Source of the DNA: Ruditapes philippinarum
Taxonomy: Eukaryota
Assembly: GCF_026571515.1 (NCBI RefSeq)
Contig: NW_026857992.1
Coordinates: 1-64,000, forward strand
Length of the DNA: 64,000 bases
Direction of reading: 5' to 3'
The translations under genes were made by a program, and so were the position numbers. A model generated the notes under the pieces. It saw only the letters and a list, made by a program, of their open reading frames with translations, ran no database searches and had not been told where the DNA came from. Below are positions 49,190 to 64,000 of the stretch, piece by piece. The stretch's first letter is position 1, and each line of letters opens with the position of its first letter.

Positions 49190-51130
49190 CATGCAGTAGT
49201 TTTAACACAAATGGTGTTTTAACGTTTGGCACTAGAAAATGGCGTTTTCTACCAAAATTTCTACACTTTTAAAAGAAAAGAAAAAATAAACAAATTTAGG
49301 TCCAAAAAACGGCCATGCCACGCGGAAATCTCTGGGCTATATTCCTTTGCCTTAACCTTTGTGCCTAATATTACTGTAAAGAAGAACCTCCAAAATGATA
49401 ATAATTTTCAATTTTCAACGGAATCACACAAATGGTGTTTAAACGGTTGGCATTAAAAATGTTTTGTTTTTTTTTTACAAAAGAATGATCGTTTTTTGTA
49501 CAGAAAAAGAACAAAACGCCGGTTAAAAAAACTACCATGCCACGCGGAAATCTATGGGCGATTATTCCTTATATTACTGTAATTTAGAACCTCCAAATTG
49601 ATACAATTTCTTATTTTCAACAGAATCACACAGATGGTGTTTAAACGGTTGGCATAAGAAAATTGTGTGTGTAACCAAAAACTGTACACTTTATATAGAA
49701 AAAGAACAAATCGCCGGTCAAAAAACGACGATGCAACGCGGACATGTCTGGGCCATATTACTTAGCTTACACCTTTTAGTCTTATATTACAGTCCAACTA
49801 ATACAATGTCCAAATTTTAACGTAACACAAAAGGTGTTTTAACGGTTGGCATTAGAAAATGGTTGTTTTTGCAAAAAAAGTATACTTTAGAAAGAAAAAA
49901 AAAAAAAATCACAGGCCCAAAAAAAGGACCATGCCACGCGGAAATCTCAGGGAATCACACCACAAATAGTGTTTTAACCGATGGCATTAGAAAATGGTGT
50001 TTGCACCAAGAATTGTACACTTTATACAGAATTTAAACGTACAAATCTCCGGTCCAAAAAACGACCATGTCGCGCGGAAATATCTGAGCCATCCTCCAGA
50101 CTAATACAATTTCTAAATTTCAAGTGAGACACACCAAAGGTGTATTAGAAAATTGTGTTTGTTACCAAAAATTGTACACTTTATATAGAAAAAGAACAAA
50201 TCGCCGGTAAAAAGAACGACCATGCCACGTGGACATCTCTCGGGGCCATATTCATTGACCTAGACCTTGGTGTCTTCCAAACTAATACAATTTCCAATTT
50301 ACAACTGCATCACACGAATGGTGTTTTAGCCGTTAGCATTACATAATAGTGTTTTAAAAGAATGAAATGTTCACATTATATAGAAAAAGAACGTACAAGT
50401 CCCCGGTAAAAAAAACAAAACAAAAAACGACACATGCCACGCGGAAATCTCTCGGTCATATTCATGGAATTAGACCTTTGTGTCTTATATTACTTTAAAG
50501 AAGAACCTGCAAACTAATACAATTTCCAGTTTTCAACGAAATTACACAAAGGGTGTGTTAACAATTGGCATAAGAAAATGGTGTTTTTCACCAAAACTTG
50601 AACACTTCATATAAAAAAACCAAATCGCCTGTCCATAAAAATGACGATGCCACGCGGATATCTCCGGGCCATTTTACTTGGCATTGAGCATTATTTATAT
50701 TACTGGAAAGAAGAACCTCCCAACAAATACAATTTTCAATTTTCAGCGGAATCACACAAAAAGCGTTTGAAACGTAGTCCTCAGAATGGGGTGTTTCTTA
50801 CGATTTTTTTTTTCACTTTATGTAAAGAAAGAACAAATCGCCGATCCAAAAAGCGGAAATGTCGAGGGTGTTTTCCTTGGGCTAGAAAATTGTAACTTAA
50901 TTATATTGCTGTAATGAAGAACCTTTAAATTTAAACTAATTGAATTTTTAATCCGCCACGGAATCAGACAACTGATGTTTTAACGGTTGACAGCAGAAAA
51001 TGTTGATTTTTACGTACGTTTATATACAGAAAGAACAAGTTACAAGTTGTGTGCCCTAGTAGTTCAAGAGAACCTCCGAACTTTTGCGGATGTTAATCTG
51101 AAACGGAATCAAAAGAATGGTGGTTTCTCA
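49190..51130. repeat. Degenerate ~140-220-bp tandem repeat array
   Basis: Recurring ACCATGCCACGCGGAAATCTC and ACAAATGGTGTTTAAACGGTTGGCATTAGAAAAT blocks, 8 or more copies. Confidence 0.75.
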
Positions 51131-51961
51131 TTTGGCTTAAAACAATGTTTTGTTTTACGAAAATGTAAACAAACATAATTGGATGTTATAAAGAACATAC
51201 AGTGTTTAATGTGATTGCATTTAATGCTACAAACTTCAATAATAAAAACTTTATTCATGGTTCAGTCATAAAAAATCTTTTATTAAAATATATGTCTTCA
51301 AAACAAAGATAATTTCAAACATTATACGCTGACGACTTTTTAATTATTTTTGTTGGTGATCCTAACTCGGTATAATTGTTAAGTAATTTGCATCTTGAAA
51401 GTTTATTAACTGAATAATATATATCCCAATAGGTTTTTATTATATCTGGCCGAGTTGACCCGTGCCGAGTTAACTCGTGCAGACTCGGTTTAGGGCCGGC
51501 TTGACACTTTACCATAAAACACGCTTATTATTTTACATAATTCTATTTTTTGTGTGTGTGTTTAATTTGCAAGTGATATAGGTCGATAAATTGTGTTTTT
51601 AAGCGCACGGTACGACCAGTTGCACAGGACGGTGTGATGAACGTTAGCCATCCGTACAGAATTGTACGGCCTTTTACAGAATTTATATATTCGTTTATTC
51701 GCAATATCTCGGACTATTTATGTCGGCCATAGTTGCTATAGGAGACAAACAGGGTAAGTTAATTTTTTTCTGTGCTGTAAGTTTATGTATGTGTGTATCT
51801 GTCCTTTTTACACGTATTTAAGAAAGTAAATATCACATATTACACTGACAAATCGAATTATTGTTAATAATTTATGTGATACTTCAGAAAAAATGTCTTC
51901 CTGATCAAATAATTTTCGTCCTCAATTATTTTCGCACATTTTGATGATTTTCGTGTATTAA

Positions 51962-54091: not shown

Positions 54092-55349
54092 TTGTAACAT
54101 ACTTACCTAATCAGTGATTTGTTCACATTTTGGGGAAAAGTGGCAGGGCCCCTCAGCTTGGGAAAAAATGAGTCATCAGCATTTTTGGGTAACCATTCAA
54201 AATCAGCAAGGTTTGAAATAATCTTTATCATTGAAAACCAGAATAACCATGCTAATATCTATGCTGTTTTCCTCGGTCAAAATCACTCCAAAACATTTCA
54301 GGAGTTTTCTTTATGTTTAACGATTTTGTGGGGGAAAAGTTTTCAATAATTGGCAAAAAATATATAATTTTTTCAGATGGGGAATGGCAAATTGATCCTA
54401 AAAATTCACTGGCAAATTTAATGGTCTTTTTCTGCTTCGAGTTCAGTAATATCCATTTGCGATTTAGAGTTATGCTGGGGGTCTTGTCACAAGCCTTCTA
54501 AGATGGTTAGGCAGAGGCAAATCAATAGGCTGTTCAGAGTAATGCACTTCTAAAATACTTAAAAGTTATAGAATTAAAGGCAATAAATGTAGTATGTTAC
54601 TGTATTTGCCTTTCCTTAACTGTATCAATTGACACTTGACATATTTGTTGTCAGAATTAAAGTAATTGTAGGTCTGATACTAAGTTTTATTATGTTGCTG
54701 TTAAAACCTCTTTTTTGACTGACCCTTTTTATGCTCCTCAGTCCTTGATCTTTTAAGTTATAGTCACTGCTTCGTTTTCAGTAGTTCTGACATGCTTACA
54801 TGTAATTCTCCAACTTAATTTTGTATTCAATATCTTCCATATTTGGTAGGTAGATATTTTAGGTGGTCTGCTAAGCTTTGGAAAGAGATTTGGGTCACTG
54901 CCCAGGGTCAGATACTGAATGCTTACTAAAAACAGATTTTTACATTTTTCACTCATACATCTTTTACATATGGACTGATGTCTTGAATTGTGATGACAGT
55001 CGAAACTTGCACAAACTCGGACACATCCAAATTACCTTTAGCCATATGTCTTGTTTTACACGGAAGTTTAAGTTCTGGTTTGTCCAATGGTTGTGTATAC
55101 TTTTCTTATGTCCTCTTGTCACACTTACTTACTTTTACTCATTGTATCTTTATATAAAAAAAACAACAACCAGGATCGTAGTTGTTTGGCATGTTGATAT
55201 TTGTTCCTTTCATGGATCTCTTTCAAATTCTTTTTTTTGTATATATAATTATATTTATGTATGAGGTTGATTGGGTCAACTCATAGTTAAAGTCACAAAA
55301 ATAGGTTTTCCATTGAACCGTAATGAATTTTCAGATGTCTTTGGTATTG

Positions 55350-56656
55350 TGTCAAGTTTTTGGTTTCACTTATGAGATTTTTATCGATATTCTGAGCGGT
55401 ATTTGTGATTATAAGTTAAGAATCGCTGTACTCCTGGACTTGCTGCCGTATTGGACTTGCTGCAGTATTGGACTTGCTGCTCTTCTTGGACTTGCTGCAC
55501 TATTGGACTTGCTGCACTATTGGACTTGCTGCACTATTGGACTAGCTACGCTTCTTAGACTTGCTGCAGTATTGGACTTGCTGTACTATTGGACTTGCTA
55601 CAGTATTGGACTTGCTGCACTATTAGTCTTTCTGCGCTTCTTGGACTTGCTGCGCTTCTTGGACTTGCTGCACTTCTTGGACTTGCTGCGCTTTTTAGAC
55701 TTGCTGCGCTTCTAAGACTTGCTGCGCTCCTTGGACTTGCTGCGTTCCTTGGACTTGCTGCGCTTCTTAGACTTGCTGCGCTCCTTGGACTTGCTTCTTT
55801 TCTGGGAAGCGGATCGTTCTTAGACTTGCTTCTTTACTGGGAAGCGGACCGTTCTTAGACTTGCTTCTTTACTGGGAAGCGGACCGTTCTTAGACTTGCT
55901 TCTTTACTGGGAAGCGGACCGTTCTTAGAGACTTGCTTCTTTACTGGGAAGCGGATCGTTCTTAGACTTGCTTCTTTACTGGGAAGCGGACCGTTCTTTA
56001 GACTTGCTTCTTTACTGGAAGCGGATCGTTCTTAGACTTGCTTCTTTACTGGGAAGCGGACCGTTCTTAGACTTGCTTCTTTACAGGGAAGCGGACCGTT
56101 TCTTAGACTTGCTTCTTTACTGGGAAGCGGATCGTTCTTAGACTTGCTTCTTTACTGGGAAGCGGATCGTTCTTAGACTTGCTTCTTTACTGGGAAGCGG
56201 ACCGTTCTTAGACTTGCTTCTTTACTGGGAAGCGGACCGTTCTTAGACTTGCTTCTTTACTGGGAAGCGGACCGTTCTTAGACTTGCTTCTTTACTGGGA
56301 AGCGGACCGTTCTTAGACTTGCTTCTTTACTGGGAAGCGGACCGTTGCTAAGGCTCAACTCTTCACTAGAAAGCCGACCGTTTTCTAGACTTGCTGCTTT
56401 ATTCGGTTCCCTCACTGGACCTGCTCACCAACAAGGAGACTTGCTGAAAATTAAGCTTTCCGACAATATGTATAAAGCTTCTTTCGAAATCAAATTTTTT
56501 TTTCTTCTTTTTTTTATTTCCAATTTCATTTCATATAAATACACAACGCGCGAACCGGATAGAACGCCACAATTGTGACGTCACGTCAAAACAATAAATA
56601 ATACAAAATGGCGGACATTTGTGTTTCTTTTCATAAATAAAATGGCTATTTTGACA
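55350..56656 (-). repeat. 3' LTR (1.3 kb, mostly 17/18-bp and 35-bp tandem repeats)
   Basis: TG...CA termini; homologous to 61102-63664; 16 copies of the 35-bp unit TTAGACTTGCTTCTTTACTGGGAAGCGGA(C/T)CGTTC at ~55787-56345. Confidence 0.93.
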
Positions 56657-56669
56657 ACAGCCCTCTTCA
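56657..56669 (-). promoter_or_regulatory. Short polypurine tract
   Basis: Minus strand TGAAGAGGGCTGT directly precedes the 3' LTR. Confidence 0.55.
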
Positions 56670-56718
56670 AAAGGAAATATTAGATATTTCTATCAAATGT
56701 CAAAATAACATTCTTTTT

Positions 56719-59700
56719 TTATTCATCTGTTTCTTGATACTGTCTGCTTAGGTAGTCTGCAAAGATATTGTCGGATCCTTTGATGGCTTCAATACGGAAC
56801 TGGTATGATTGAAGAAATAAGGCCCACCTCACTAATCGACCATTGTCTGGTGTACTTTTCTGGATGTACGACAATGAACTGTGGTCCGTTTGTATGATGA
56901 ACTCTTTCCCATACAAGTATTTTTGGAACTTCTTTATTCCATATACGATTGCTAGACACTCTCTTTCTCCTACAGAATATTCCTTTCACGATCAAGTAGC
57001 TTTTTGCTTGCAAGGCAATAGGAAACAAGTCTCCCTCATATCTCTGAAGCAATGCTGAACCTATCGCAGCATTCGAGGCATCAAACTGTAAAATGAATTA
57101 TTTTGAAAAATCAGGCAGTCGAAGATATGGACTCTTGGTTTGATGCTCCTTTAAAGTATTAAAAGCTTTTTCCTGCTCTTCTCCCCATCGTACATTGTTT
57201 GGTAGGCCTTTATTCGTTAAGTCTGTAAGTGGTGCCGCAATCTCAGCAAACGATGGTATGAATCTCCTGTAATATCCGGCAGGTCCTAAGAACGCTTCTG
57301 ACTTGTCTTTTAGTCTTTGGCACTTCTGCTTCTTTGATTCTTGTCAGTTTTTTCCCTCCATTTGAACTATATGCCATTTCCAACCATGTGTCCTGTAAAA
57401 CCAATGTTGTTATATCCTATATAACACTTCGATGGCTTTATGGTAAGCTCTGCTTCTGCCAATCTTTGGAGGAGCTCCCGCAGCATTGTCATATGTTCTG
57501 TCCAGGTTGTTGTATGCCCTATCATATCGTCAACATAGTTTCAACAAAATCACACCTGCCAATAACTTCCGCATCATTCTGTTGAATGTGGCTCCAGAGT
57601 TAACCATACCGAAAGGCATTTTCTTGAATTGATAACTCCCTCTATCCGTTGCAAATGCTGTAAATCTGCGGCAATTTTCAGCAACTGGGATTTGCCAATA
57701 ACCTTTGCATAAGTCGATCTTGGTAAAATACTTAGCATCTTTCAGCTTTGCCATGATATCATCTACGCTTGCCATTGGTTCGGTGTCAAATTTGGTGACG
57801 GCATTCAGTCTTCTAAAATCAATACAAAATCGATTACTCCCATCTTTCTTCTTGACAATGACTATCGGTGCGTTGTATTCCGACACAGATGGTTCAATCA
57901 CATCAGCCTTTATCATATCTTGTATTTCATTTTCAACAGCTTGTCTCTTGGCATATGGTATGGGGTACTGTTTCACTCTCACCGGCGTCTTGTCTGTTAA
58001 TTCAACATGGTGCTCTATCAGTGGAGTTGTTCCTGGTCGCTCTGAAAACACTTCGCTAAATTCTTTAAGTATTGAAAGGACTTGCTTCCTCTGTTCAGGA
58101 GTAAGTCCCTCACTGATATTGACATCTTGGTATGTCTCTCCACTTGTGTAGTTAGGGAAGTCCAGGAGACTTTCGTCGTCCACCGCTCCATCTGAATTAT
58201 CATCAACGTCTTCTATGATTGCTACACTTGCTGCAATCTTATCTTGGCGTTCTTCATATTTCTTCAGCAAATTAATGTGGAACGTCTTCAGCTTGTCTCC
58301 AATCTTGATTCTGTAATCAAATTTATTCATTACTTCGACAACTTGAAAAGGTCCTTTCCATTGAAGCATCATCTTATTATTGTCTGTGGGTAAAAGCAGT
58401 AAGACTTTATCTCCAACACGCAAAACTCTGTTTCGAGCTCTCTTGTCATAGTGATGCTTATAGGTATTCTTGGCTTTCATCAGGCTTTCTCTGGCTATCT
58501 TGCATGTCTCCTCCAAGCGCTGCTTCAGGTTGAGCACATATAGGTATGTATTCTGTATATCAGGATCTTCTCCTTGAGTCCACATGTCCCTTAGAATTTG
58601 CATGGGCCCTTTTACTGTTCTTCCGTAGAGCAACTCAAACGGGGAAAAGCCTGTACTCGCCTGTGGTACCTCTCTATATGCAAATAATACGGCCGGTAGG
58701 TATCTATCCCAGTCCTTGGGTCTTTCCTGGCACATCTTCCGCAGCATACTTTTAAGCACTCCATTCATACGCTCACACAAGCCGTTGCACTTTTGATTGT
58801 AAGGTGTTGTGAAGAGTTGCTTCACAGATATGAGTCGGCATATCTCTTTCATGAGGTCTGCTGTAAATTGACTTCCTCTGTCACTTAGAACTTCTGAAGG
58901 AAATCCTACCCTTGAATATATTTCAAGCAGTGCTTCAGCAATGCTCTCGGTGTCTATTTTCGCCAATGGCACGGCTTCAGGGTAACGTGTGGCAAAATCC
59001 ACCACCGTCAAGATATATCTGTTGCCCTTCTCCGACACTGGTATAATCGGTCCTATCAAGTCTATTGCTACTCGATGAAATGGTTCCTCAATCACCGGCA
59101 TGTCTCCTAGGGGGACCTTCTTCACTCGCCCTTTTGGGATGGTCTTCTGGCACACGTCACACGATCTGCAAAAACGTCCCACATCTCCCGTTATTCCTGG
59201 CCAATGGAAGCTTGTCAGGATTCTGTCCTCTGTCTTTTTAGATGACAAATGTCCACCAACAATGGATTCATGGGCAAGTTCCATCACTCTCTTCCTAAAG
59301 TCTGTCGGAACAACAATCTGCTTGGAGTCATCACCATTTTTCTGAAAGTAGGCTCTAAAAAGCACACCGTTTTCCACCACGTATTTAAACTTGGCCCCAC
59401 CTTTGGTTTGTAGCTCTTCTGCCTTCTCTGCTAAGTCCCAAACTTTCTTTAATGAAGAGTCACCTTTCTGGGATTCCTTCAATTTCTCTATGTCAACTTC
59501 AGCTTCGCAGGAAGGTTTTGGAACAGTCAACGCTCTAGTTGGACGGTCTGCTCTCTGATGCTGTGCTCTTGTCATGACTGCTGCAACAGCCGATGGTTCT
59601 TCTGTCTCCTTCCATTCAGGATCAGGCTTATCAAGTACTCCAGCAACGTTACCAATCACTAAATCGCATATTAATGACTTAAGCACCATTGCCTCTAACT

Positions 59701-61058
59701 CCCCAACATAGTATGGCGTATCTACCCATATTTTCGCCAAAGGTACTACTTTGGCATCTCCATCAATTGTTATCATAACAATTTCTTTACCCGTGAGTTG
59801 TTCTTCTTTCACAAACTTCTTCTTTACCGCCGCTAACTCACATCCAGTATCTCTCAGCACTCTAACTGCATCTGCTCCAACAAAGCCCTTTTTCAACTCC
59901 AGGTTTCTTTCTTCTTCCAATAAATCAATGGTACAAGCTCCCGCGAGGATCGGCACAGTCTCACCACTGGCTAACTTCAACTTTCCATTTTCAGTGTTCT
60001 TCTCCAGTGGATTAAGGTCTGCTTTGGCACATACGGCTGCTACCTTGCGGTCACTTCTTACATCTTCTGGTTTTGTCTGCCTACAATCTTTTGCAATATG
60101 CCCCGTCTTGTTGCAAATAAAGCACACCTTCGGTGCTTGGCTTCTGTTGTTCTGTCGGCAGTCTCTGGCTAAATGGCCCGCCTTATTACAAATAAAGCAT
60201 GTCTTCACTAGCGAATTTCTATTCTCTGTCACTCTGCTTGATGTCTCTGGAATGGATCTCTTGCCCATCTGCCCTTGTTTTGGAACTGGAGTACCTCTGG
60301 CAAAAACAGAAGACGCCCCTTTATGCGCTTCTATGTACTGCTCTGCAAGGCGTGTTAACTCTTCTATTGATGTCGGCACTCTTTCTTTCAGGAAGACAGC
60401 CAAATCTGTGGAACACCCCTCGATGAACTGTTCCTTGATTAATAGCTCGCTTATTCCATGAAAGGTCTGCTCTACTCCAGCCATATCTGTCCACCTTGTG
60501 AAATATCGTCTCAACCTCTCAATGAACTGAAAAACAGACTCACCAGGTAGTGGTCTGCTCTGCCTGAACTTCACCCTGAAACCCTCTTCAGTCAACTGGT
60601 ATCGTTTTAAGATAGCCCTCTTCAGGGTGTCATACTCGTTGGCTTCTTCAATAGGCAAACTTGTAAAAACTTCCAGACCTTGCCCTGATAGTAATGAGCT
60701 TAAGCTCATTGCCCAAGAGTCTCTCTCTCAGTCTTGGCTGATGGCAAATCTTTCAAATCTCTCCAGAAATGAATCTATATTATCATTTGCTTCATCGAAC
60801 TTAGGTATTCTTGGTCTTGCTTCCCTCACTGGTGGTTACTTTGCAGGATTTGATCCGCTCAATCTCGAGATCTTTTTCCTTCATCTGGAGCTCAAAGTTT
60901 ATTTCCATCTGTCTTCTTTCTTCTTCACGCCTTCGGGCCCTTTCCTCTCTGGCTAGGCATTCTTCTTCCTTCTCTTGAAGAAACAATAATAAATCGCTGC
61001 CGGATAACCCTAGCTTTTCTCCTATTCTTAACCATTCGTCGTAATACATATTGCTCAT
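56719..61058 (-). pseudogene. Disrupted gag-pol; intact 1059-aa stretch at 57530-60709
   Basis: SCAN-like capsid, two CCHC knuckles (~60083-60199), protease LRDTGC (~59845), integrase HHCC + D,D,E + GPF, then RT (RFCIDFRRLN, MPFG; YVDD at 57526-57537 out of frame) and RNase H (DAS...ERECLA...TDH...ADYLSR). Frameshift near 60850, TGA at 60728-60730, several frameshifts in 56970-57560. Confidence 0.9.
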
Positions 61059-61081
61059 TTTATCAAAATCTCTTTTAAGTG

Positions 61082-61099
61082 ATCCCGGACGAGCCCCCA
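61082..61099 (-). promoter_or_regulatory. Primer-binding site, tRNA-Pro
   Basis: Minus strand reads TGGGGGCTCGTCCGGGAT, 2 nt after the 5' LTR; this is the known 18-nt tRNA-Pro PBS sequence. Confidence 0.92.
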
Positions 61100-62334
61100 A
61101 TTGTCAAGTTTTTGTTTTACTTATGAGATTTTTATTGAAATGAGCGGTACTTGAGATTATAAGTTAAGAATTGCTGCACTCCTTCAACTTCCTGCGCTGC
61201 TTAGACTTGCTGCAGTGTTTGACTTGCTGCAGTATTGGACTTGGTGAACTATTGGACTTGCTACGCTTCTTAGACTTGCTGCAGTATTGGACTTGCTGTA
61301 CTATTGGACTTGCTACAGTTTTGGACTTGCTGCACTATTGGACTTGCTGCACTATTAGTCTTTCTGCGCTTCTTGGACTTGCTGCGCTTCTTGGACTTGC
61401 TGCGCTTCTTGGACTTGCTGCGCTTTTTAGACTTGCTGCGCTTCTAAGACTTGCTGCGCTCCTTGGACTTGCTGCGTTCCTTGGACTTGCTGCGCTTCTT
61501 AGACTTGCTGCGCTCCTTGGACTTGCTTCTTTTCTGGGAAGCGGACCATTCTTAGACTTGCTTCTTTACTGGGAAGCGGACCGTTCTTAGACTTGCTTCT
61601 TTACTGGGAAGCGGACCGTTCTTAGACTTGCTTCTTTACTGGGAAGCGGATCGTTCTTAGACTTGCTTCTTTACTGGGAAGCGGACCGTTCTTAGACTTG
61701 CTTCTTTACTGGGAAGCGGACCGTTCTTAGACTTGCTTCTTTACTGGGAAGCGGACCGTTCTTAGACTTGCTTCTTTACTGGGAAGCGGACCGTTCTTAG
61801 ACTTGCTTCTTTACTGGGAAGAGGACCGTTCTTAGACTTGCTTCTTTACTGGGAAGCGGATCGTTTCTTAGACTTGCTTCTTTACTGGGAAGCGGATCGT
61901 TCTTAGACTTGCTTCTTTACTGGGAAGCGGACCGTTCTTAGACTTGCTTCTTTACTGGGAAGCGGACCGTTCTTAGACTTGCTTCTTTACTGGGAAGCGG
62001 ATCGTTCTTAGACTTGCTTCTTTACTGGGAAGCGGACCGTTCTTAGACTTGCTTCTTTACTGGGAAGCGGATCGTTCTTAGACTTGCTTCTTTACTGGGA
62101 AGCGGACCGTTCTTAGACTTGCTTCTTTACTGGGAAGCGGACCGTTCTTAGACTTGCTTCTTTACTGGGAAGCGGACCGTTGCTAAGGCTCAACTCTTCA
62201 CTAGAAAGCCGACCGTTTTCTAGACTTGCTGCTTTATTCGGTTCCCTCACTGGACCTGCTCACCAACAAGGAGACTTGCTGAAAATTAAGCTTTCCGACA
62301 ATATGTATAAAGCTTCTTTCGAAATCAAATTTTT

Positions 62335-63510
62335 TTATGCCCTCACAATGTGGGAGCATATAGCGTTGCACTTGTCCGTCCGTCCGTCAGTCCGTCCGTC
62401 CGTACGTCCCGAAATCTTGTGAACGCAACTCCTCTTAAACCGGATGGCAGATTTTGCTTAAACTTACAGGGATGAACAACCTTAATGTGTAGATGGTAGT
62501 AAAGGAAGGAATTTTCGCTGCGACCAAATTTAACAGAATTATGGCCCTTTGTTGATTTTTTCACTAGATACTATGTAGAAATTTTGTGAACGCAACTCCT
62601 CTTAAACCGGATTGCAGATTTTGCTTAAACTTACAGGGATAAACAACCTTACTGTGTAGATGGCAGTAAAGGAAGGAATTTTTGCTGCGACGAAATTTAA
62701 CAGAATTATGGCCCTTTGTTGATTTTTTCACTATATACTATGTAGAAATTTTGTGAACGCAACTCCTCTTAAACCGGATGGCAGATTTTGCTTAAACTTA
62801 CAGGGATGAACAACCTTAATGTGTAGATGGCAGTAAAGGAAGGAATTTTTGCTGCGACCAAATTTTACAGAATTATGGCCCTTTGTTGATTTTTTCACTA
62901 TATACTATGTAGAAATTTTGTGAATGCAACTCCTCTTAAACCGGATGGCAGATTTTGCTTAAACTTCCAGGGATGAACAACCTTAATGTGTAGATGGCAG
63001 TAAAGGAAGGAATTTTTGCTGCAACCAAATTTAACAGAATTATGGCCCTTTGTTGATTTTTTCATTATATACTATGTAGAAATTTTGTGAATGCAACTCC
63101 TCTTAAGCCGGATGGCAGATTTTGCTTAAACTTCCAGGGATGAACAACCTTAATGTGTAGATGGAAGTAAAGGAAGGAATTTTTGCTGCAACCAAATTTA
63201 ACAGAATTATGGCCCTTTGTTGATTTTTTCATTATATACTATGTAGAAATTTTGTGAACGCAACTCCTCTTAAACCGGATGGCAGATTTTGCTTAAACTT
63301 CCAGGGATTAACAACCTTAATGTGTAGATGGCAGTAAAGGAAGGAATTTTTGCTGCGACCAAATTTAATCGAATTATGGCCCTTTGTTGATTTTTAGTTT
63401 TCAACTTGTGGCACATGTAGACCAAAAAATATTTGACCTTGTCCTAGTCATAAGATTGACAGAACAGTGGCGTGTGGGGGCATCCGTGTCCTATGGACAC
63501 ATTTCTAGTT
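62335..63510 (+). mobile_element. Non-autonomous Helentron-like (HINE/pearl-type) element with 167-bp core repeats
   Basis: Inserted in a T-run; ATGCCC.../...GGGCAT subterminal IRs, (GTCC)n microsatellite, ~6 x 167-bp repeats (starts 62421, 62588, 62755, 62922, 63089, 63256), 3' hairpin GTGTCC-TAT-GGACAC, CTAGTT end. Confidence 0.85.
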
Positions 63511-63520
63511 TTCTTCTTTT

Positions 63521-63622
63521 TTTATTTCCAATTTCATTTCATATAAATACACAACGCGCGAACCGGATAGAACGCCACAATTGTGACGTCACGTCAAAAC
63601 AATAAATAATACAAAATGGCGG
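63521..63622 (-). promoter_or_regulatory. Putative U3 promoter of the 5' LTR
   Basis: In element sense: YY1-like CCGCCATTTT (~63613-63622), CRE TGACGTCA (63584-63591), TATA-like TATTTATA (63542-63549), AATAAA (63521-63526); identical copy in the 3' LTR (CRE at 56576-56583). Confidence 0.55.
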
Positions 63623-64000
63623 ACATTTGTGTTTCTTTTCATAAATAAAATGGCTATTTTGACATATTGTTACGGCCTTTCTTTACTCTATACCTCTACT
63701 CTTGTTTGCATTTTGTCATTTATAGTTTTAAAATAATATTGACAACATTGGAACAATTATATAGCAGTGTTTTTTCTTTCAATTTTCAAAACAACCTGTG
63801 GCTTTCTGAAGAAGAAAATATAGCACAATAAATCAGAAAAGAGGGAAATGAAATTATGGAATTAACCCACACATTTTATTAAATTTTCAATTTCAATTCA
63901 ATTTAACATGCATTGTACATAGCAGAGGCTATCTATAGGCTTCTAGCTGCTTTTAAGTCATGGTTCTGGTGAAAAATGTGCACAATGCCTTTTAGGGGAA

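Follow-up and report, generated by a model that had tools for sequence, protein, structure and literature searches.

Tandem arrays in the LTRs of Ruditapes philippinarum retrotransposons share sequence with the hexapeptide-coding repeats of the sperm PL-I genes

Judged by comparison of their sequences, the tandem arrays in the LTRs of a retrotransposon of Ruditapes philippinarum share descent at the DNA level with the hexapeptide-coding repeats of the host genes for the sperm protein PL-I, above all with those of paralog B. The retrotransposon lies in the window, by which we mean the whole stretch of 64,000 bp that was analysed (positions 1 to 64,000 of contig NW_026857992.1, assembly GCF_026571515.1). 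A first-pass annotation of the window had read the LTR repeats as PL-I-like hexapeptides and proposed that the element had captured part of a PL gene. The explanation that we consider best as a whole is that an array of PL-I tail origin came to lie in R/U5, spread as a cassette and then decayed, and we give this reading a probability of about 0.65.

The features of the element are listed in Table 1. Its primer-binding site matches the complement of what we take to be the 3ʹ end of tRNA-Pro. In the long ORF, the integrase (IN) occupies residues 467–638 and the reverse transcriptase (RT) begins at residue 952, which places the integrase upstream of the RT. The domains found are all of gypsy type (integrase with H2C2 and rve, RT, RNase H, and CCHC gag), and by domain content and order the element is a member of the Ty3/gypsy lineage with a Gmr1-like order. 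According to PMC6238403, which cites Goodwin and Poulter 2002, a gypsy-type element with its integrase upstream of the RT has the Gmr1-like order. The window element resembles the Gmr1 clade of Ty3/gypsy in combining the order gag-IN-RT-RNase H with gypsy-type domains; the clade was described from deuterostomes, and the likeness noted here is one of domain order.

The 5ʹ LTR is interrupted upstream of its TATA-like box by a nested insertion. This insertion contains (GTCC)9 followed by a tandem array of 5.9 copies of a 167-bp unit (96% alike), and it ends in the hairpin GTGTCC-TAT-GGACAC followed by CTAG, with no canonical TC at its 5ʹ end. It was found neither in the 3ʹ LTR nor in 15 other LTR stretches sampled from the same family (W, see below), and it looks like a non-autonomous element of Helitron/Helentron type carrying a satellite. 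From the loss of the reading frame in the RT together with this private insertion in the 5ʹ LTR, we conclude that the window copy of the element is dead. Elsewhere in the window, positions 50097–51154 hold six diverged copies of a 78-nt unit, about 145–232 bp apart.

Table 1. Coordinates of the retrotransposon, its LTRs and the tandem arrays in the window
Feature	Position	Strand	Description
LTR retrotransposon, whole element	55350–63664	−	Complete, with a target duplication of 5 bp, a primer site for tRNA-Pro and the order gag-integrase-RT
5ʹ LTR, 2563 bp	61102–63664	−	Begins TGTC, ends GACA; from LTR-LTR alignment and termini
3ʹ LTR, 1307 bp, uninterrupted	55350–56656	−	Begins TGTC, ends GACA; from LTR-LTR alignment
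Target-site duplication CAATA	63665–63669; second copy 55345–55349	not assigned	
Primer-binding site, 18 nt, 2 nt past the 5ʹ LTR	61082–61099	−	Complement of the presumed tRNA-Pro 3ʹ end
Polypurine tract adjoining the 3ʹ LTR	56661–56668	−	
1059-aa ORF	57530–60709	−	SCAN-like gag, CCHC knuckles, integrase, start of RT
Remnants of RT and RNase H in further frames	56719–57525	−	Reading frame breaks within RT
Nested insertion private to the 5ʹ LTR, 1172 bp	62337–63508	+	Within a T-run; Helitron/Helentron-like, non-autonomous
35-bp array, 20.5 units, 94% matches	61516–62236	−	TRF; includes one 36-bp unit at 61834–61869
Regular 18-bp array	61357–61548	−	Unit identical to the KKRSKS coding unit of PL-I paralog B
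Degenerate 17/18-bp units, core GCAGCAAGTCC	61171–61356	−	Frame drift
18-bp and 35-bp arrays of the 3ʹ LTR	55431–56401	−	TRF
5ʹ edge of the array region: SKSP, SKSRKRSAF, one AATAAA	62237–62290	−	Motif in common with the R-subfamily LTR

The reading of the arrays as hexapeptides was borne out. The minus strand from 61548 to 61189 reads SASQKRSKS KERSKS KKRSKS and so on to KKRRKT with one stop, and then drifts in frame. Of the two peptides that had been reported from the flank, SKSRKRSAF was read as described and SKSP was read in a neighbouring frame. TRF called the 18-bp array as 20 copies over 61171–61527, and for the matching block that had been placed at 55436–56447 it returned the array pair of the 3ʹ LTR; the blocks form the LTR pair of a single element. 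The 35-mers, which rotate in frame, translate as RSASQ*RSKSKNGPLPSKEASLRT.

In every 5ʹ LTR examined, the arrays lie on the sense strand of the element, 88–133 bp upstream of the tRNA-Pro primer-binding site (PBS). Within the LTR, they come after a TATA-like box and end about 70–100 bp short of the LTR end. Because they fall between the TATA-like box and the primer-binding site, the arrays would, by position, belong to R/U5, that is, to the 5ʹ leader of the element RNA, which fits the U5 placement proposed earlier. No sign of their translation was found, there being no start codon and there being stops at the array edge.

A Pfam linker-histone search of the host genome (1.41 Gb, 15,874 contigs) returned ordinary H1 genes and, on contig C15439, a match within a long ORF of very basic composition. 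This contig carries two tandem PL-I genes about 5 kb apart, and each of them combines an H1/H5 winged helix with long K/R/S-rich N- and C-terminal tails in a single ORF. In gene A (422 aa, with a PF00538 match of 41.9 bits, above the cut-off), the N-terminal tail consists of repeats of 24 residues (RKRSAS KKRSKS KKRNRS KKRSKS) with a 72-bp higher-order unit, and it is followed by the winged helix and a basic C-tail. In paralog B (465 aa), the tail is a long run of (K/R)KRSKS. When 1.84 billion representative proteins were searched, the best match of gene A was the 75-aa Swiss-Prot entry P22975, “Sperm-specific protein PL-I” (61% identity, E = 6e-16), which we take to be the Spisula solidissima trypsin-resistant core of PMC11607694. 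In another search, no homologous protein was found at E ≤ 0.001 for the globular plus C-terminal region of PL-I, and the exact PL-I sequences were absent from a 15-billion collection.

For Spisula, two PL-I isoforms have been recorded (AY626224/5, PMC5550673). The host genes have the winged helix in common with PL-I of S. solidissima, the identity of 61% applying to the 75-aa core alone, and like Spisula the host has long K/R/S tails and two isoforms or paralogs. According to the first-pass annotation, the N-terminal tail of Spisula PL-I is built of tandem (K/R)KRSAS hexapeptides. Unlike the Spisula PL-I gene, the LTR arrays have neither a start codon nor a winged helix, and they carry stops and frameshifts; on their sequences, they are non-coding relatives of PL-I tails, not PL-I genes.

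Degenerate hexapeptides are present at the edges of both host tails, and the core of the B tail is very homogeneous. Outside the tails, genes A and B are separated by a dS of 0.41, and this value, together with the presence of a tail in both paralogs, implies that the tail existed before the A/B split. A further PL-I sequence lies outside the gene pair: the locus L031 (G000:C5169:38672-41929) contains, at about 1489–1880, a 254-bp fragment of the 3ʹ coding end of paralog B (90.6% identity) that adjoins an inverted 59-bp piece of 100% identity, representing a rearranged PL-I pseudogene fragment.

The first-pass annotation depended on nucleotide similarity between the arrays and a host PL-I gene, and such similarity was clear, from single units to whole tails. 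The commonest unit of paralog B is AAGAAGCGCAGCAAGTCC (12 copies), which is identical to the LTR 18-mer at 18/18 positions; its AGG variant occurs 11 times, and these two are the most frequent units in the LTR arrays of the W and R families. Gene A encodes the same hexapeptide, KKRSKS, by the codons AAA AAG CGT AGC AAA TCT, and if only the peptide were common, six matching codons would arise by chance with a probability of 1/1728 under equal codon use. With low-complexity filtering off, blastn aligned the tail of gene B to LTR arrays at 82–88% over 370–600 bp, always sense to sense, and the tail of gene A at 73–76%, also sense to sense. The 18-mer scored 66 (shuffle mean 9.6, maximum 35) and the 35-mer scored 35 (shuffle mean 8.8, maximum 23), with 2000 shuffles in each case and a z of about 15 for the unit shuffles. 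In the genome, the exact 36-mer coding for KKRSKS RKRSKS occurs 27 times, 5 times in gene B and 22 times in about 14 LTR loci, and its reversed control occurs 0 times.

The 35-bp unit had been described as a 36-bp coding unit short of one base, and alignment in codon phase agrees with this description. The 36-bp variant of the 35-mer, aligned at phase 0 to the RKRSAS-KKRSKS 36-mers, matches gene A at 25/36 and gene B at 26/36 positions, and it has GGTCCGCTTCC in common with gene A. As for the rare 36-bp variants reported in the LTRs, the unit at 61869–61834 does read KKRSASQ*RSKS and a 36-bp spacing does occur in the other LTR, but the latter lies near 55959–55995 and not at ~56100.

Beyond the periodic array, similarity was found only in a 15-mer at an array edge and in a 72-nt non-periodic block in one LTR. 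The 15-mer belongs to the edge of the R array and is shared with gene B codons 60–65 (the RSKSP region). The block stands at the array start in L040, where it encodes RRRRSKS-KKRSAS-KKRSKS and is identical to gene B codons 281–304 at 68/72 positions, 44 nt of them in an exact run; a 41-nt probe allowing ≤3 mismatches found only L040 and gene B in the genome. In blastn searches, the PL-I promoter, UTR, unique N-terminus and winged helix were not found in any LTR, nor were LTR flanks found in the PL-I genes, and the similarity stops at the array edges.

The locus L040 itself (G000:C11403:50250-50970) is an R-type LTR end, in which the region upstream of the array is unrelated to the U3 of either R or W. 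Because no primer site follows the array, it is a solo or 3ʹ LTR, possibly a truncated or recombinant one.

Several other candidates were set aside. The idea that gene B arose as an LTR insertion into a gene was rejected, as no LTR flank is present in or beside its ORF, and four low-complexity “PL-I-like” matches (L041, L042, L049 and L050) were dropped as unrelated satellites. A degenerate unit pair of 32 nt gave 0 matches in a metagenome scan. Separately, a 449-aa protein from an ENA eukaryote contig (P0005) was observed to be gag-like, with a CCHC knuckle and a C-terminus made of an (E/K)RSKS-type hexapeptide run; it comes from another organism and represents a retroelement protein whose K/R/S repeat tail is translated.

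The arrays occur in three LTR subfamilies, named W, R and S. The W family, that of the window element, has many members, and the non-array parts of its LTRs are 90–99% alike among copies. The R family has 36-bp RKRSKS-KKRSKS arrays; in one R copy (L047), the LTRs are 98.9% identical and flank an uninterrupted 1445-aa gag-IN-RT-RNase H ORF (IN at 567–739, RT at 1052–1209). The S set is made up of LTR pairs only about 2 kb apart. Two S pairs, L045 and L046 (G000:C14410 and C7709), show the same arrays and the tRNA-Pro primer site, and they are likely to be non-autonomous elements related to the R family. A pattern search of the host genome found 326 tRNA-Pro PBS sites.

Outside the arrays, the subfamilies are far apart. 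Between W and R, protein identity is 61% and synonymous divergence is saturated; the U3 regions of the two are unalignable, and the U5 ends are 36% identical between W and R and 69% between R and S. In the arrays, the mean unit distance per 18-mer is 2.0–2.5 among the subfamilies and 2.2–2.5 between any subfamily and gene B, and gene A stands at about 5.2 from both the LTR subfamilies and gene B. W and R also have the 5ʹ edge of the array in common, with AGCAAGTCTCC followed by GTGA-GCA-GTCCAG. On this sequence evidence, the array behaves like a cassette that the gene and three element lineages have in common, with at least two distinct exchanges. The retention of the dominant units across diverged subfamilies suggests either a recent spread or some benefit to the elements.

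This pattern might also come from a two-way exchange that is still continuing, in which repeated template switching or gene conversion keeps the array alike. Such an exchange would account for the dominant units being identical, also to those of gene B, while the ORFs, U3 and U5 of W and R are far diverged, and the second, different gene-B block at the edge of one R-type array is consistent with it. Nevertheless, one recent capture followed by cassette transfer between co-packaged subfamilies would give the same pattern, as would selection on the array within the elements, and no conversion tract was demonstrated. We regard a continuing exchange as possible, at clearly less than even odds. It is compatible with either origin, and under it the question of the donor would have no single answer.

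Sequence variation among the LTR units bears on the direction of transfer. Units with a single change are synonymous in the KKRSKS frame in 61/84 and 104/120 cases, compared with 1–21% in the other two sense frames. The synonymous bias noted in the first pass therefore stands when variants are counted by occurrence, the KKRSKS frame being far above the other sense frames, but it is carried by only two to three frequent variants and has marginal significance if these are counted as independent events. None of the frequent variants (TCT, CGA, AAA and TCA) changes an amino acid in the PL-I frame, and the PL-I genes use them as well. The rare variants are random and include TAG stops, Cys codons of the CpG-to-TpG kind, and frameshifts. 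Taken together, the unit variation looks like diversity that was laid down under protein constraint and was followed by neutral decay.

We favour the direction from gene to LTR, which seems the likelier one for several reasons. Both paralogs have tails with older-looking degenerate edges, matches of the LTR arrays are confined to the homogeneous core of B type, and the variants that are frequent in the LTRs are silent in the PL-I frame, the rare ones being random. In addition, the 35-mer is most simply understood as a 36-mer minus one base, and the genes are free of the decay variants private to the LTRs (TGC, TAG and 17-mers). The earlier claim of transduction from a PL gene is thus upheld with regard to homology, location and sense orientation; its direction is only favoured, and the first-pass annotation had itself listed the reverse.

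In the reverse direction, the minisatellite would have been born in the LTRs, and LTR arrays would have built or overwritten the tail of PL-I B by gene conversion or exonisation, affecting either its homogeneous core or the entire tail in this gene family. There are hundreds of potential LTR donors, with the 326 PBS sites and many arrays, against one gene; the units of gene B are indistinguishable from the LTR unit pool, and the homogeneity of the B core suggests recent turnover. As the distance of gene B to the LTR arrays does not exceed that between one subfamily and another, gene conversion by LTRs is equally compatible with the distances. The core GCAGCAAGTCC is present in all three LTR periodicities (35, 18 and 17 bp), and this motif could be LTR-born too. 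On the other hand, gene A has a hexapeptide tail of its own that uses other codons and shows the 72-bp higher-order unit, and the degenerate hexapeptides outside the core in both genes indicate a tail older than the A/B split. Neither the LTR-private decay variants nor the LTR flanks appear in the gene, and the frequent LTR variants are those that the protein frame allows. The breakpoints give no direction, because on either side the similarity goes no further than the edges of the array. Weighing these points, we consider the reverse direction doubtful.

Chance or convergence, by which an AAG/AGC-rich minisatellite would merely be readable as K/R/S hexapeptides, is very improbable: any 18-bp tandem unit keeps frame and K/R/S-rich low-complexity matches are abundant, many of them unrelated repeats, but the units are exactly identical to gene units at 18/18 and 36/36 positions, a 44-nt exact match lies inside a non-periodic block, and the empty reversed control, the shuffle z and the consistent orientation all argue against it.

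In the favoured history, from gene to LTR, a stretch of the PL-I tail was most likely copied into U5. The RT may have switched between the element RNA and PL-I mRNA during copying of the leader, PL-I mRNA being presumably a co-packaged and very abundant mRNA of spermatids; gene conversion at the DNA level would be an alternative route with the same outcome. A single switch would have been enough, since whatever lies in U5 reaches both LTRs in the following cycle. Afterwards the array would have been carried to hundreds of copies and passed among W, R and S as a cassette, with homology-guided switching permitting exchange to recur and the array to move between W, R and S RNAs packaged together. 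As a non-coding array in an LTR, it undergoes expansion, contraction and decay, accumulating stops, CpG-to-TpG Cys codons and 17-mers, and the loss of one base would have turned the 36-mer into the 35-mer. The uniform sense orientation fits the template-switch route, if weakly.

LTRs that contain host-derived sequence have been described before. The Cassandra, Helenus and Ajax TRIMs have LTRs with sequence derived from 5S rRNA or tRNA (Kojima 2024, PMC10886601). As is likely for the elements studied here, sequence from a host gene is present in both LTRs of these TRIMs and is propagated with the element, and probable non-autonomous relatives exist here too (the S pairs of about 2 kb). The sequence concerned differs, being a small-RNA gene with a Pol III promoter in the TRIMs and the coding minisatellite of a protein gene here. 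Unlike in the TRIMs, the array described here would lie in the leader (R/U5) of elements that are autonomous, and it has no evident promoter role. Retroviruses and LTR retrotransposons are also known to transduce gene fragments, as in oncogene capture and capture of the maize Bs1 type, for which template switching is the usual explanation. Such transductions, like the capture proposed here, place sense-oriented host mRNA sequence in a retroelement; the fragment in them is internal and unique with clear breakpoints, whereas here it lies in the LTR and only a repeat array is in common.

Soybean Gmr9/GmOgre elements have retrotransposon-associated minisatellites (PMC3305785). These resemble the present arrays in having units of tens of bp, in occupying a non-coding part of an LTR element and in varying in copy number between copies, and they differ in having no known host-gene counterpart. 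For the protamine genes of fish, there is an old and disputed idea of “retroviral horizontal transmission”, connected with the LTR-like flanks of trout protamine genes, and work by Saperas et al. in 1994 (cited in PMC11607694) reportedly argues for alternatives to such transmission. That idea, like the present finding, ties sperm basic protein genes to LTR elements; it concerns whole genes flanked by LTR-like sequence, whereas here a repeat that is internal to a gene is found within LTRs, and the sequence identity is direct. Our literature search turned up no earlier description of LTR leaders that share a protein-coding minisatellite with a gene for sperm chromatin.

For annotation, the arrays are a hazard, as hundreds of LTR arrays in the genome may be mis-called as PL-I-like or SR-rich ORFs. 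We also speculated that the array is not passive, that continuing exchange keeps it identical in the essential sperm gene and in the leader of active-looking elements, and that it benefits the element as a mimic of host mRNA, although we consider this unlikely. If it were true, the germline small-RNA defence would be unable to target the leader without also striking PL-I mRNA, or else the leader would make use of the way in which spermatids store and handle PL-I mRNA; conversely, the pool of elements would push the PL-I tail to evolve rapidly.

Sperm nuclear basic proteins are fast-evolving, and their repetitive tails are not known to have a source of novelty. Retrotransposons are active in the germline, where the genes for these proteins are expressed. 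A codon-identical minisatellite in PL-I and in the leaders of three element subfamilies offers a concrete case of sequence flow between an essential reproductive gene and mobile elements. It raises the questions of whether the RT brings about recombination between element RNA and mRNAs that are abundant in spermatids, whether piRNAs directed against an element can cross-hit a host gene, and whether element copies serve as a reservoir that reshapes the repeat tail of PL-I.
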